From IMG/VR virus record IMGVR_UViG_3300046692_000091, positions 186,001 to 250,000 of that record: 64,000 nucleotides of DNA, one strand, 5' to 3'. Below the pieces are notes generated by a model. That model had not been told where the DNA came from. It worked only from the letters and a program-made list of their open reading frames with translations, and searched no databases. The position numbers were made by a program, and so were the translations under genes. Below, one piece after another: positions 12,126-24,803 of the stretch (its first letter is position 1; every line of letters begins with the position of its first letter).

Positions 12126-13385
12126 TTAACCTTTTACGCAGAGAATTTGTTTGAGAGTATGGACGATGTCCACGAGTTGTTCTTGTGCAGACATTACGTC
12201 TTCGATGTTCTTGTAAGCTTTTGGTGTTTCATCGATGACAGAGATATCCTTACGACATTCTACACCAGCTGTATCACGGACATGATCTTCCAGGGTGAAT
12301 GTCTTAGCAGCCTGAGTACGGGACATGACTCGGCCAGCTCCGTGTGAACACGAGCAGAAAGAATCACGGTTACCTTTACCACGGACGATGAAAGACTTAG
12401 CGCCCATCGAACCAGGGATAATCCCGAGTGTACCTTTATCTGCGTTCACTGCACCCTTACGAGTTACCAGAACGTTGTTACCGAAGTGGCGTTCTTCTGA
12501 TACGTAGTTGTGGTGGCAGTTGATGGCCGACATATCGGAATCGATTGGCAGACCTAGAGTACGGTGGATAGCACCAAGAGTAGCATGCATCATGATCGAA
12601 CGGTTAAGTGCAGCGAAGCGTTGTGCCCAGGACACGGCTTCGATGTAGTCGTTGTAATATTGCGAACCTTCGGGGAGGTAAGCGAGATCACCATCTGGCA
12701 GATGAATGAAGAAACGTTTCATTTCTTCTTTTGCTTTCGAGATAAAGTAAGTACCGATTGCGTTACCGATACCACGAGAACCAGAGTGCAGCATCACCCA
12801 CACTTGATCGGATTCATCCAGACAGATCTCGATGAAGTGGTTACCTGTACCGAGAGTACCTACATGGTTCCATGCACGAGCTGCAGCTTTCGCCAACTTA
12901 GGATGACGTTCTACAATACGTTCCAGATGCTTACGCAGTTTCTCTGCTTCATCACGGATAGCTTGAGATTGGTGAGTGAACACGGATACCGTACCAAATG
13001 CACCACGATCGTTCTTCCCACCGTTGTCAGTACGGCCATGAGGCACTGAGGCTTCGATAGCGGCACGCAAATGGCCAAGAGAGGTCGGTAGTGCTGTGGA
13101 CTTAAAAGTAAGGCGCTGCGCAGCCATACCACAACCGATATCAACACCTACTGCGGCTGGAATGATTGCGCCTTTAGTAGCAACCACAGAACCCACTGTT
13201 GCACCTTTACCCAAGTGTACGTCGGGCATCACAGCAATGTGCGAATAGATGAATGGGAGGGCAGCAATGTTCTTGAGTTGAGAAATTGCTTCTTTCTCTA
13301 CTGGTACGCCAACGGTCCAGCCTTTGATTGGTTTAGAACCTGGTTCTACTGTATCACCAATCAGTTCAAATGTTTTCTGTTTCAT
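12126..13385 (-). CDS. rtcB: RtcB family 3'-phosphate RNA ligase
   Basis: Motifs MPDVHLGKGATVGSV, VGVDIGCG, GTLGTGNHFIE, MLHSGSRG, CHHNY, IPGSMG, SCSHGAGR, DETPKAYK. Confidence 0.97.
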   Translation of the reverse strand: MKQKTFELIGDTVEPGSKPIKGWTVGVPVEKEAISQLKNIAALPFIYSHIAVMPDVHLGKGATVGSVVATKGAIIPAAVGVDIGCGMAAQRLTFKSTALPTSLGHLRAAIEASVPHGRTDNGGKNDRGAFGTVSVFTHQSQAIRDEAEKLRKHLERIVERHPKLAKAAARAWNHVGTLGTGNHFIEICLDESDQVWVMLHSGSRGIGNAIGTYFISKAKEEMKRFFIHLPDGDLAYLPEGSQYYNDYIEAVSWAQRFAALNRSIMMHATLGAIHRTLGLPIDSDMSAINCHHNYVSEERHFGNNVLVTRKGAVNADKGTLGIIPGSMGAKSFIVRGKGNRDSFCSCSHGAGRVMSRTQAAKTFTLEDHVRDTAGVECRKDISVIDETPKAYKNIEDVMSAQEQLVDIVHTLKQILCVKG

Positions 13386-13449
13386 ATAAAGCCTCACGCG
13401 GATGGAAAGAGGAATTGTTACATACACTGACTTTGCCAGTATTATTAAA

Positions 13450-13477
13450 CGGCATAAGGGTTCCCCGGAGGGAACCC
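13450..13477 (-). terminator. hairpin terminator-like element
   Basis: Minus strand GGGTTCCC-TCCG-GGGAACCC-TTATGCCG. Confidence 0.75.
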
Positions 13478-13491
13478 GAATACTTACAGGA

Positions 13492-13809
13492 CTACTTGTT
13501 ACTCAGATGGCATTGAAGATCTGCCATGACGTCGTCCGCAACCTTACGTCGCCCTAACATTCCTGTTAGTTCTTCAAGGGTGCATTCTTCAGGGTCCCAT
13601 TGACCTTCTAGTCCCATACAGGAGCAGTGTGATCCATGGACTTCATAGTACTTACCATTCTGTTCGTAGAGCACGTAGGCGGACCCACTGTAATCTTCGT
13701 AAGTATAGTCAGCGTGTATGATAGTTACCCCTTCAAGCTCAGACATCCGTACATCAAAACTCAATGCTACGTCTTCAATATCACCTTCGGACCAATCGTT
13801 GTAAAACAT
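13492..13809 (-). CDS. acidic hypothetical phage protein
   Basis: 105-aa ORF with YSGSAYV and GSHCSCMGLEGQW motifs. Confidence 0.8.
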   Translation of the reverse strand: MFYNDWSEGDIEDVALSFDVRMSELEGVTIIHADYTYEDYSGSAYVLYEQNGKYYEVHGSHCSCMGLEGQWDPEECTLEELTGMLGRRKVADDVMADLQCHLSNK

Positions 13810-13924
13810 GTTCTATACCTTTAAGCGTGATTACGATGCTCGTAATCTTCATTTGCTTATTGCGTATAGTCCTGTATAATGTATCTCTACCAGTATTTCT
13901 TTATCTGGATGAGACAGCATAATG

Positions 13925-14222
13925 AGAACCCTAAGGCCCCCTATGCTTAAGTAATCTACAATACCAATGGCCGGCCTGCTCTATCGCCCACCTATAGGGA
14001 GCGATCATTGGTAAATGTAGCGCCACGAGTTGGCAGTATCTTTCCAGTCACGGACACCACTCATCGGGTGCCTCTATGGACCATCAAGATAGTTGAACTT
14101 ATGACTCGGCATCAGAGAGACTGTCACATCTCTAAGCACCATTCGGGTTGAAGCTTGACAGGCTTCGTTTTGTAGGTCTTCCTCCTTGTGTGTAGTAACC
14201 GCGCAACGCTACACTCTGGTCG
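13925..14222 (-). ncRNA. putative ~300-nt structured ncRNA
   Basis: ORF-free; promoter motif at 14223-14244; helices GTGTAG/CTACAC, AGAGA/TCTCT, GGCACC/GGTGTC, TACCAATG/CATTGGTA. 3' boundary approximate. Confidence 0.6.
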
Positions 14223-14244
14223 TATACTATTACGTTCTCAGTAT
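14223..14244 (-). promoter_or_regulatory. putative ncRNA-associated promoter motif
   Basis: ATACT-gagaac-GTAATAGTATA on the minus strand. Confidence 0.7.
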
Positions 14245-14245
14245 T

Positions 14246-15130
14246 TTATTTCAGGAAAGTACCACAACTTGCTTGTACATCAGTACCAACGCGAGGAATT
14301 AGTTTTACACGTGCATTGGGTAATCGGCGTTTGATGTAACGATGTAAGTAATCGATATGGCCTTCTACTGGTTCACGAGAGTAATGCCCTTCTGGTGGAT
14401 TGTACCGAACGATGTTCCAATTAACCTCTAACTGATATCCATCGATCACATCCAGGATAGCTTTAACATCAGCAAGGTTATCATTTTCATGTTCAATGAA
14501 AGCGTAGTGGATCTTCGGAACTTTGCCTGTGTGCAGCTGCCAGTCTTTGAGGATTGCGAATGCATCTCGTGGGTAACCCGCTTTAGGTAACCAACGTTTA
14601 CGAAACCGATCATTCAATGAGTAGACCGAATAATAAATCTCGGGGTATACCTCTGGATCAGTGAACACCGATTCAAGTGACCGGCGACTAAACTCTTCTG
14701 GCATGATAGTAGATATCAGGAACTTTGATTCAAGTCCATATCTGGCTGCACGTTTCTTTAAGCCACGCAAGATCTCATCGGCATTACTTAGAAAGATCTT
14801 ATTAGCTAAAGGTTCGCCTCGTGCCATGAAGTTGAAATGGACCATCTTAGCTGGATGCTTGTCGGCATAGTATCGTAGGACTTCATCTGCTTGCTGCCAG
14901 AATTCTTCAATCGTGGTATCACGTAGTTTATTCTGACCTGTTGCAGTTAACCAGCACATCCGGCAAGCTTGCTTACAACCTGTCTGAGACGACAAGTAAA
15001 CAATGAAGTAGTCATCAACCCGACGTACATATCGTGCCTCTAGCATCCCTGGGTGATCTTCAAAGCGGTGTTCGAAGTTTACTGATTGATCGAGTTGGGA
15101 TACATGTTGTTTAAAGATTAGATTATCCAT
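14246..15130 (-). CDS. RlmN/Cfr-like radical SAM protein
   Basis: SSQTGCKQACRMC (CxxxCxxC), FMARGEPLAN (MGMGEP-like), C-terminal ASCG. Confidence 0.85.
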   Translation of the reverse strand: MDNLIFKQHVSQLDQSVNFEHRFEDHPGMLEARYVRRVDDYFIVYLSSQTGCKQACRMCWLTATGQNKLRDTTIEEFWQQADEVLRYYADKHPAKMVHFNFMARGEPLANKIFLSNADEILRGLKKRAARYGLESKFLISTIMPEEFSRRSLESVFTDPEVYPEIYYSVYSLNDRFRKRWLPKAGYPRDAFAILKDWQLHTGKVPKIHYAFIEHENDNLADVKAILDVIDGYQLEVNWNIVRYNPPEGHYSREPVEGHIDYLHRYIKRRLPNARVKLIPRVGTDVQASCGTFLK

Positions 15131-18444: not shown

Positions 18445-18528
18445 GAAAGGGAACAGGAATCGAACCTGCGTTTCCGGCTTGGTACTTATGGTGGCCACCG
18501 GTGTCCTAGGCCGCTAGACGACCCCTCT
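18445..18528 (-). ncRNA. tRNA-like RNA (Glu-type body) with 18-nt anticodon loop
   Basis: AGAGGGG-TC-GTCT-AGCGGCCT-AGGAC-A-CCGGT-[18 nt]-GCCGG-AAAC-GCAGG-TTCGATT-CCTGT-TCCCTTT-C; no CCA. Confidence 0.7.
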
Positions 18529-18646
18529 CACAAACTTGGTCGGGTTTTTGTTAAACCAGGCTAACCGATATCCCTGGTCCCTATCGAGTAAGCTCTAGGG
18601 GAGTCTTACTCTTACGCTCGTTTGGAGACTTAACGACAGTCTCTCG

Positions 18647-18668
18647 TATACTATTACACTGCCAGTAT
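18647..18668 (-). promoter_or_regulatory. putative ncRNA-associated promoter motif
   Basis: ATACT-ggcagt-GTAATAGTATA. Confidence 0.7.
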
Positions 18669-20920: not shown

Positions 20921-20996
20921 TGGCTCCGAGACTAGGATTCGAACCTAGGACCAACGCATTAACAGTGCGCGGCTCTACCAACTGAGCTATCTCGAA
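20921..20996 (-). tRNA. tRNA-Asn(GTT)
   Basis: GCGCA-CTGTTAA-TGCGT; G73; CCA. Confidence 0.93.
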
Positions 20997-20997
20997 A

Positions 20998-21074
20998 TGG
21001 CTCCATGACCTGGACTCGAACCAGGGACACCTTGATTAACAGTCAAGTGCTACTACCAACTGAGCTATCATGGA
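20998..21074 (-). tRNA. tRNA-Asn(GTT)
   Basis: CTTGA-CTGTTAA-TCAAG; G73; CCA. Confidence 0.93.
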
Positions 21075-21231
21075 ATGTACTGGGATGCCGGGCTTTACCG
21101 GATGATCGTTTTATCTAGACTCCCTCTCATGTCTAGCGATGCTTGTATCCCCAAGGATAGCCTAGGCTTGCAGCGAGCTAACGGTTACCCGTTTGGTGCA
21201 AGAGCTGATCTAGTCTACCGATGGAAATTCT

Positions 21232-21315
21232 TTATCTATCAGCGGGTCTTGAAGCCGCACACGGTCGATGGTATTTAGCCAACGATTGTCCTACCGATTG
21301 GACGATGATAGATAA
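21232..21315 (-). ncRNA. degenerate tRNA-like RNA with extended anticodon arm
   Basis: TTATCTATCA/TGATAGATAA closing stem; D-arm GTCC-AATCGGTA-GGAC; 7-bp arm TCGTTGG/CCATCGA; T-like arm GCGG-CTTCAAGAC-CCGC. Confidence 0.55.
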
Positions 21316-21439
21316 TGAAACGTTTACCTAGACAGTTCCCTAATAACTGATTACCCTGCGCGTCAGGTCGTTCGTTTATTAGGTAGGCGTGTATGCGACG
21401 CCTCGTTTTAGTTCTGCTCCTAAGAGCCTTCTGTCTAGC

Positions 21440-21519
21440 ACGCCCCTACCGGATTTGAACCGATGACCGATCAACGTATGGTTACCGTCGATTGCTCTAC
21501 CTAGCTGAGCTAAGGGGCG
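21440..21519 (-). ncRNA. tRNA-like RNA (Ile2/Met-type body) with 7-bp anticodon stem and 9-nt loop
   Basis: CGCCCCT-TA-GCTC-AGCTAGGTA-GAGC-A-ATCGACG-GTAACCATA-CGTTGAT-CGGTC-ATCGG-TTCAAAT-CCGGT-AGGGGCG-T; no CCA. Confidence 0.75.
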
Positions 21520-21523
21520 ACAA

Positions 21524-21608
21524 TGGTGGGTGCAGAAGGATTCGAACCTTCGAAGTCAGCGACGGGAGATTTACAATCTCCTGGGTTTGGCCACTCCCCA
21601 ACACACCC
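21524..21608 (-). tRNA. tRNA-Tyr(GTA)
   Basis: GGAGA-TTGTAAA-TCTCC; long variable arm; CCA. Confidence 0.93.
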
Positions 21609-21853
21609 GTATCAGCAGCAGCCGGTCCACCCGGTCATGAGGTTTTAACTCTTCTGTGCTGATAGTAAAACATTTGAAATTAGCTATGGAGAAAGGCGAC
21701 TCGTTTTATCTCCTGACTTGTACCCATGCACCCATTATTGATCCACTGGGCGACTCCTTTAGTGTGGATCGGGCTGTACCTTACCGTCGTTGTAAGCTAA
21801 TTTCAAAACTAACGAGGCAGTAGAAGTCCGAAGGACCAATACCACCTCTAAGA

Positions 21854-21930
21854 TGGCGCAACCAGCGGGACTCGAACCCGCGACCTCTTGCGTGACAGGC
21901 AAGCATTCTAACCAACTGAACTATGGCTGC
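21854..21930 (-). tRNA. tRNA-Asp(GTC)
   Basis: CTTGC-CTGTCAC-GCAAG; G73; CCA. Confidence 0.95.
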
Positions 21931-21933
21931 AAT

Positions 21934-22026
21934 AAACTAGTCGCGCTTTAACCCGCGTAAGCTAATAGCCCTGTTATGGCGGGCCGTCCAAATCAAGGGA
22001 GTTGAACCCGAGTTCTCGACTAGTTT
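21934..22026 (-). ncRNA. four-way-junction RNA with T-like and D-like arms in permuted order
   Basis: 10-bp closing stem AAACTAGTCG/CGACTAGTTT; arms GGG-TTCAACT-CCC, GCCC-9nt-GGGC, CGC-GGGTTAAA-GCG. Confidence 0.55.
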
Positions 22027-22033
22027 AAAAAAA

Positions 22034-22111
22034 TGGGGTGAGCTACGGGTCTCGAACCCGTGACCTCCAGGGTCACATCCTGGCACTCTAACCAACTGAG
22101 CTAAGCCCAAC
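22034..22111 (-). tRNA. tRNA-His(GTG)
   Basis: CCAGG-ATGTGAC-CCTGG; G-1:C73; CCA; atypical A32 and U1.C72. Confidence 0.85.
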
Positions 22112-24652: not shown

Positions 24653-24682
24653 GCGGCATAAAGGCCATCCCGAGGGACAGCC
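24653..24682 (-). terminator. hairpin terminator-like element
   Basis: Minus strand GGCTGTCC-CTCG-GGATGGCC-TTTATGCCG; pairs fully only on the minus strand (two G-U pairs). Confidence 0.75.
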
Positions 24683-24781
24683 TCTAAGATGTGACAGCTA
24701 CAGAAGGATCGCTTCTAGAGGACTCTGTATCAGAGTACCCGGCGTGTAACTGGTTGGTGTTAAGGCGCGTACGTCCTCAAC
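24683..24781 (-). ncRNA. putative ~100-nt small RNA
   Basis: ORF-free stretch between the promoter motif (24782-24803) and the terminator; hairpins TTGAGG/CCTTAA and ACTCTG/CAGAGT. Confidence 0.55.
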
Positions 24782-24803
24782 TATACTATTACCCAGCCAG
24801 TAT
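24782..24803 (-). promoter_or_regulatory. putative ncRNA-associated promoter motif
   Basis: ATACT-ggctgg-GTAATAGTATA. Confidence 0.7.

Follow-up and report, generated by a model that had tools for sequence, protein, structure and literature searches.

Structured RNAs of several kinds are found near phage tRNA genes or next to genes of RNA metabolism. Bacterial Y RNAs (YrlA) are encoded next to rtcB in rsr-yrlA-rtcB loci; they have tRNA-like features and a presumed role in RNA repair or quality control. GOLLD and ROOL are large, many-helix "ornate" RNAs of roughly 580-800 nt and unknown function, which lie beside tRNA genes in phages or prophages and form RNA-only multimers (10.1101/2024.12.08.627333). 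Phages also encode tRNAs and anticodon-loop variants that counter host anticodon nucleases. T-box leaders combine several helices and a pseudoknot with a codon-like triplet in a loop and a terminal hairpin upstream of an RNA-metabolism gene. In the jumbo phage phiKZ, many short 5'UTR RNAs arise by premature termination, and 5'UTR-derived ncRNA candidates of 71-196 nt lie between a phage promoter and a terminator (PMC10914365). Here we describe a structured RNA of about 300 nt in relatives of these phages that matches none of the known RNA families searched.

A conserved element between a radical SAM gene and rtcB

We analysed a 64,000-nt stretch (the window), bases 186001-250000 of the 314,814-bp complete virus record IMGVR_UViG_3300046692_000091. 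The record is a jumbo phage whose nearest named relatives are the Pseudomonas jumbo phages Psa21, D6, RVTF4 and, further off, 201phi2-1. All genes around the element are on the minus strand, and a 436-nt gap separates the radical SAM gene from orf105 and rtcB. The features, in window coordinates, are as follows.

14246-15130, minus strand: upstream gene for a 294-aa radical SAM protein distantly like RlmN/Cfr RNA methyltransferases
14222-14248, minus strand: promoter-like motif AAAATACT-N7-GTAATAGTATAC, overlapping the stop codon of the radical SAM gene
13919-14221, minus strand: inferred transcript of the structured ncRNA, about 300 nt, with ends inferred and not mapped
14190-14214, minus strand: P1 hairpin (GUGUAG/CUACAC) with a conserved loop ending in GYGGUU(U/A)
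14174-14183, minus strand: small variable hairpin AGG-AAGA-CCU inside a purine-rich linker
14150-14166, minus strand: P2, a 5-bp stem with a 7-nt loop, CUGUCAA, shaped like an anticodon stem-loop
14143-14149, minus strand: strand after P2 (AACCCGA) that pairs with the P1 loop (14196-14202) in a pseudoknot
14108-14140, minus strand: two-part hairpin P3a/P3b with loop GUGACA
14022-14105, minus strand: central arm with the long-range helix P4 (GUCAU/GUGGC), then P4b, P5a, P5b and the P6 hairpin
13956-14020, minus strand: 3' arm with P9, P8, the P7 hairpin and a mini-hairpin with a palindromic GGCC loop (13970-13979)
13924-13941, minus strand: terminator-like hairpin (GGGGGCC-UUAG-GGUUCUC), followed by (U)UUAUG
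13492-13809, minus strand: orf105, a phage-only protein of unknown function, preceded by a weaker copy of the promoter motif (13874-13897)
12126-13427, minus strand: RtcB RNA ligase

The radical SAM protein scored E = 5e-15 against the NCBIfam RlmN model and E = 1e-11 against Cfr, both far below the curated cut-offs; it falls in PHROG 27142 and matches Pfam Radical_SAM weakly. RtcB was identified by Pfam at E = 5.6e-128. orf105 belongs to PHROG 8792 and a DUF7574-like cluster, which gave no functional clue. A 64-90-nt stretch within it (13572-13661) is 74-81% identical at the DNA level to genes in Serratia phage BF, Erwinia phages, Brevibacillus phage Sundance and Pseudomonas phage HPP-Temi. 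This family is sometimes mis-annotated as "integrase", carries a GSHCSC motif and in Serratia BF sits next to a tRNA pseudogene.

The element lies in a tRNA island, with twelve tRNA genes 1.5-8 kb upstream on the same strand. ARAGORN found 11 of them, none in the region of the element, and no tmRNA. The twelfth (18445-18528, minus strand; 84 nt, 36.1 bits against a gathering score of 29) was missed by ARAGORN and by a first Rfam pass with fast filters, and has an unusually long insert between the D arm and the T arm. All four GUN-anticodon (queuosine-family) tRNAs (Asn x2, Tyr, Asp and His) are clustered at 20921-22110 on the minus strand, 7 kb away from the element; this is the target set of E5-type anticodon nucleases.

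All pairings listed in the original prediction are present on the minus strand, and no ORF of 60 aa or more lies in the gap, so the observation itself is confirmed. GTGTAG/CTACAC corresponds to P1, AGAGA..TCTCT to P3b, GGCACC/GGTGTC to P6, and TACCAATG/CATTGGTA encloses ATCGCTC/GGGCGAT (P8 and P7). On its own the sequence is unremarkable: the minimum free energy equals that of shuffled sequences (z = 0.16 on the minus strand, 0.80 on the plus strand), so that the hairpins alone are no more than chance. A search against Rfam, proposed in advance as a check on the element, returned no family at the gathering thresholds, nor in 13400-14700 at E up to 10. A blastn search with the RNA alone against 50,697 phage records found no match.

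Homologues were reached only through the neighboring genes. D6, Psa21 and RVTF4 have a 319-387-nt unannotated gap at the same place. Loci fetched from IMG/VR through the radical SAM protein and through RtcB, and then searched with nhmmer, gave four more distinct copies, here called L011, L016 (identical to L017 and L018), L009 and L014. Together with the window, these make eight distinct phage sequences, in which the element always lies directly 3' of the radical SAM gene and 5' of RtcB. RtcB follows 0.4-1.2 kb downstream in all eight loci, and orf105 is present in seven; in Psa21 it is replaced by another gene while the RNA stays.

The family is small and phage-restricted. A degenerate pattern built from the invariant core and scanned without regard to context added no member: it gave 39 stretches in IMG/VR, of which only the known loci had a paired P2, 3 stretches in JGI metagenomes, of which one was real and already known, and none in the GTDB genomes. 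The RNA is single copy in its genome, and a model of the 5' core found nothing in nine complete genomes of related or RtcB-bearing phages. 201phi2-1 and Viktualia have the radical SAM gene but no gap and no nearby RtcB. Among relatives without the RNA, two (201phi2-1 and Phabio) lack RtcB and three carry a 63-65% identical RtcB elsewhere; in the related jumbo phages G001, G004 and W01 (our labels), this second RtcB lineage occupies a different genome position, and RtcB therefore seems to have been acquired or moved more than once in this group. Two phages with an 80-81% identical RtcB lack the RNA.

Helices kept by compensatory change

The original prediction had staked itself on covariation among homologues, and comparison of the eight sequences settles the question in its favor. 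RNAalifold on their alignment predicted 37 pairs, 25 of them with double changes. MAFFT and a covariance model could not put P1 and P3 in register; we therefore parsed 13 helices by hand in each sequence and checked them by script, bearing in mind that hand parsing can flatter short helices (P4b, P5b, and P7 in D6). Own partners pair at 552 of 563 positions (98%), as compared to 1837 of 3094 (59%) when the 5' strand of one clade is set against the 3' strand of another. Eighty pairs are G·U, so only the minus-strand RNA can form this fold. In unconstrained partition-function folds most helices have high probability in most homologues, and in L009 all 13 are at 0.86 or above.

Individual helices follow the same pattern. 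P1 has 7 different stem versions in 8 sequences, with 45/45 positions paired against 51% with partners from another clade. P3a and P3b have 8 versions each (38/38 and 44/47 positions paired), and P9, P8 and P7 have 6-7 versions each (46/46, 44/46 and 49/49). The terminal hairpin has 8 versions with 60/60 positions paired, and its G·U pairs work only on the minus strand. P4 shows compensatory G-C to A-U changes, and C-G to G·U in RVTF4. D6 and L016 replace P7 and the GGCC mini-hairpin with one long hairpin; the mini-hairpin, a possible RNA-RNA dimerisation site, is present in the other 6 of 8. The small hairpin in the purine-rich linker is weakly supported: by eye, 3-bp versions occur in 6 of 8 sequences, a 2-bp version in L009 and none in RVTF4.

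Tool-based pair counting was limited to columns in register, namely P2, the pseudoknot and the loop-loop pairs. In P2, 5/5 pairs are compensatory and 100% paired. The P1 loop (G-Y-GGUU) pairs with the strand after P2 (ACC-R); the core 3 bp are paired in 8/8 sequences, and Y-R covaries from C-G to U-A in D6 and RVTF4. With only 8 sequences in about 5 clades statistical power is limited, and the pseudoknot rests on this single covarying pair. For the three interactions together, no shuffle in 500 reached the observed covariation score, and sliding the partner by 1-3 columns dropped pairing from 88% to 27-39%. A long-range pairing of the P1 loop with GGCCG in the 3' arm, suggested by RNAalifold, was rejected because its covarying position is broken in 2 of 8 sequences.

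Contigs from two other metagenomes carry close variants of the element. Of nine changed helix positions, eight keep pairing, including A129-U200 (numbered from window 14227 as RNA position 1), which becomes G-C, and five G·U to Watson-Crick shifts; the A-U to G-C change in one variant, X2, lies in P4b. One change breaks a terminal pair, and the other changes and a 3-nt deletion fall in loops and linkers.

Two of the predicted pairings are not conserved and are probably chance. TGTAGCG/CGCTACA, put forward as an alternative 5' pairing forming a possible pseudoknot or switch, is seen only in the window and L011; in our model CUACA pairs with UGUAG as P9, and the pseudoknot between the P1 loop and the strand after P2 is supported instead. 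GCCA/TGGC fails because GUGGC is the 3' strand of P4. The purine stretch AAGGAGGAAG, described as unpaired, is present in the linker that holds the small variable hairpin but only partly conserved (GGAAG in 6 of 8, absent in RVTF4), and is Shine-Dalgarno-like only in the window. A resemblance of the window's P6 loop to 23S rRNA around A2503 is not conserved in the other homologues and was dropped.

These data bear on whether the element is an RNA gene at all. A conserved DNA-level site, or a small protein gene missed by the ORF cut-off, would be compatible with the ordinary single-sequence folding energy, and transcription is unproven. However, the G·U pairs make the fold work in RNA but not in duplex DNA, and insertions and deletions fall in loops. 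A translated small ORF had been named as something that would overturn the RNA reading; the frames, starts and lengths of small ORFs differ in every homologue, and none is conserved. We consider this alternative very improbable.

Transcription signals

The upstream motif AAAATACT-N7-GTAATAGTATAC is conserved in all 8 homologues, with TATG replacing TATAC in D6, RVTF4 and L016. In the whole 315-kb genome the full motif is found only here, before tRNA-Leu (window 15889), before tRNA-His (22196), and at 18667 and 24802, two sites followed by conserved non-coding sequence. TATAC ends 1-2 nt before the mature 5' end of tRNA-Leu, and of tRNA-Ser in D6; by analogy, we place the 5' end of the RNA near 14221, and its 3' end at the covarying hairpin. 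The motif resembles the phiKZ middle-promoter element AAanTTACc centred near -24, with TATG at the start site (PMC4666361). AAAATACTG is centred about 24 nt before the inferred start, and TATG or TATAC sits at the start; this is a comparison with the published motif only, with no start site mapped, and leaves assignment to that promoter class undecided. A generic scan for sigma-70 promoters and intrinsic terminators called neither the motif nor the final hairpin, as expected for a phage that uses its own RNA polymerases; the hairpin has no long U tract. The same scan called the complement of P2 plus TTTTGT (14149-14167) a plus-strand terminator. No plus-strand gene ends there and the T run is not conserved in the homologues, so this is probably an artefact of the minus-strand hairpin.

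The motif at 18667 is followed by a ~125-nt non-coding leader (18529-18667, minus strand) ahead of the twelfth tRNA, which starts with the hairpin GAGAC-UGUCGUUAA-GUCUC and is conserved by nhmmer in L011, L014 and the related contig L134. The motif at 24802 precedes a candidate ~110-nt ncRNA (24655-24802, minus strand) with a GC-rich hairpin followed by TTTATGCCG; it is conserved in two related contigs (L133, L134) and has no Rfam match. A hairpin plus TTTATGCCG also recurs at other gene ends. Likewise, a hairpin followed by (T)TTATGCCG recurs at intergenic junctions, at window 13918-13923 and at other gene ends (for example L006:1050-1110, in a further fetched locus, and L014:4638-4689). TATG is the phiKZ late-promoter core with the G as the start site (PMC4666361), so these junctions may be terminator-promoter pairs, and the TATG after the RNA's terminal hairpin may belong to the next gene.

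The position of the element suggests another model, a cis-acting leader, T-box-like or riboswitch-like, whose terminal hairpin would control read-through into orf105 and rtcB, perhaps by sensing tRNA-Asp through the GAC triplet in the P3 loop. The RNA lies directly upstream of orf105-rtcB on the same strand and ends in a hairpin, the P3 loop carries GAC followed by a purine as T-box specifier loops do, and phiKZ has its 5'UTR RNAs. Yet no antiterminator is conserved: the best alternative partner of the terminator's 5' strand lies at a non-homologous place in each of the 8 sequences. Promoter-like motifs for orf105 and for rtcB follow the hairpin, the RNA persists in Psa21 without orf105, and Rfam returned no T-box or riboswitch match. 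Together, these observations make a leader unlikely.

Taken together, the interpretation of the element as a ~300-nt minus-strand structured ncRNA with its own promoter motif and no recognisable family is supported, except for the 5' switch. Expression was not examined, as only DNA runs, and no public RNA run, hold the sequence.

Possible functions and relation to described RNAs

We are highly confident that this is a real structured RNA gene of a previously undescribed class. Conservation of the locus, the compensatory changes, the strand-specific pairing, the sharing of the promoter motif with tRNA genes and the absence of a conserved ORF are shown by our analysis, whereas the transcript ends and any function are inferred; it is the RNA class that is new, and no new mechanism has been shown. 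In this view, a separate gene, transcribed from a phiKZ-type middle-like promoter that the phage otherwise places in front of tRNA genes, would yield a stable, compactly folded RNA with a 5' core (P1, its pseudoknot, and the P2 and P3 hairpins with their invariant loops) and two long arms (P4-P6 and P9-P7).

The loops suggest a tentative mechanism. The P2 loop reads C-N-GUCAA in all 8 sequences and in the window matches the phage's own tRNA-Asp anticodon loop, CUGUCAC, at 6 of 7 positions; window positions 14129-14123 in P3 spell AUGUGAC, the anticodon loop of the phage tRNA-His. From established knowledge, which was not tested here, colicin E5-type tRNases cut GUN-anticodon tRNAs and leave 2',3'-cyclic phosphate and 5'-OH ends, which RtcB seals, and E. 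coli RlmN makes m2A37 in tRNA-Asp and tRNA-His among others. The RNA may act in trans in RtcB-linked handling of tRNA anticodon-loop damage by binding a protein that recognises GUN anticodon loops: it could titrate a host anticodon nuclease, or dock the phage's own RlmN-like enzyme or RtcB. Several observations weaken this model. The base at the U33-equivalent position is not conserved (C in D6, A in Psa21), and the P3 loop has 6-8 nt rather than being a 7-nt anticodon loop. Close relatives do without the RNA, which argues against any essential role, and the RlmN-like gene occurs without it. A more speculative and unlikely extension is a counter-defence RNA of a new kind, which would display both anticodon loops to trap or report a host nuclease that cuts GUN-anticodon tRNAs, or would hold damaged tRNA ends for the adjacent RtcB. 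Together with the phage's own GUN tRNAs, it would form a three-part system that supplies tRNAs, decoys the nuclease and repairs the damage.

The strongest rival, possible and only slightly less favored, is that the P2 and P3 loops simply kiss. Their cores, GUCA and UGAC, form 4 invariant complementary pairs in all sequences, including RVTF4, where the rest of P3 is rebuilt, and this alone could explain their conservation. Together with the pseudoknot, the kiss would lock a compact core of an architectural RNA, which would work as a scaffold or as a homo-oligomer, for example through the GGCC loop, for a purpose unrelated to tRNA mimicry. It would then resemble GOLLD and ROOL, which also lie near tRNA genes, although Rfam gave no match to either. 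The kiss is plausible but unproven, as the loop bases do not covary and the flanking loop pair is unpaired in 3 of 7 sequences; D6 and L016 also lack the GGCC hairpin.

A catalytic or processed RNA, self-cleaving or cut and then sealed or circularised by RtcB, appears doubtful. The core is pseudoknotted with invariant nucleotides, and RtcB, present in all 8 loci, joins exactly the ends that self-cleaving ribozymes produce. However, Rfam gave no match to any ribozyme family (hammerhead, twister, pistol, hatchet, HDV-like or glmS) even at E up to 10, no second ribozyme copy or repeat flanks the unit, and nothing in the sequence marks a cleavage site; self-cleavage was not assayed. The element is not an intron: the radical SAM ORF ends at the same stop codon in phages without the RNA, their proteins align to residue 294 of 294, and no group I model matched.

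Large, intricately folded RNAs with no assigned class are rare and have repeatedly led to new biochemistry. This one lies in nucleus-forming jumbo phages (the phiKZ/201phi2-1 group), whose RNA biology is almost unexplored, and its position offers a concrete and testable handle on what RtcB does for a phage; three cultured phages (Psa21, D6 and RVTF4) carry it. If the anticodon-loop mimicry is functional, it would add an RNA decoy or sensor to the tRNA-centred arms race between phages and bacterial defences.

How does this RNA compare with the systems described above? The phiKZ candidates come from the same phage family and are likewise intergenic and bounded by a promoter and a terminator; they are shorter and have no reported covariation-supported fold, and since phiKZ itself was not searched here, homology is neither shown nor excluded. 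T-box leaders are similar in length, helix number, pseudoknot, loop triplet, terminal hairpin and position upstream of an RNA-metabolism gene, but no T-box sequence was found, and this RNA has its own tRNA-type promoter motif. Like YrlA, it is a structured RNA encoded next to rtcB, but it is about three times longer and has a different architecture; the only YrlA (RF02553) hits in the window are weak (34.8 and 24.1 bits against a gathering score of 69) and lie on tRNA genes, Pfam TROVE has no match in the 315-kb genome although control genomes gave matches, and no Ro or archease gene is present. GOLLD and ROOL share the phage context beside tRNA genes, and loop-loop contacts are important in both, that between P2 and P3 being plausible rather than proven. 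They show no sequence or structure match in Rfam and are two to three times larger than this RNA, which is known only from 8 Pseudomonas jumbo-phage sequences and whose multimerisation was not measured. Finally, neither ARAGORN nor the Rfam tRNA model finds a tRNA here, and without an acceptor or T arm the RNA could act only as a mimic, which is not shown; what it has in common with the phage tRNAs that counter anticodon nucleases is its place in a tRNA island and hairpin loops identical or nearly identical to the anticodon loops of the phage's tRNA-Asp and tRNA-His.
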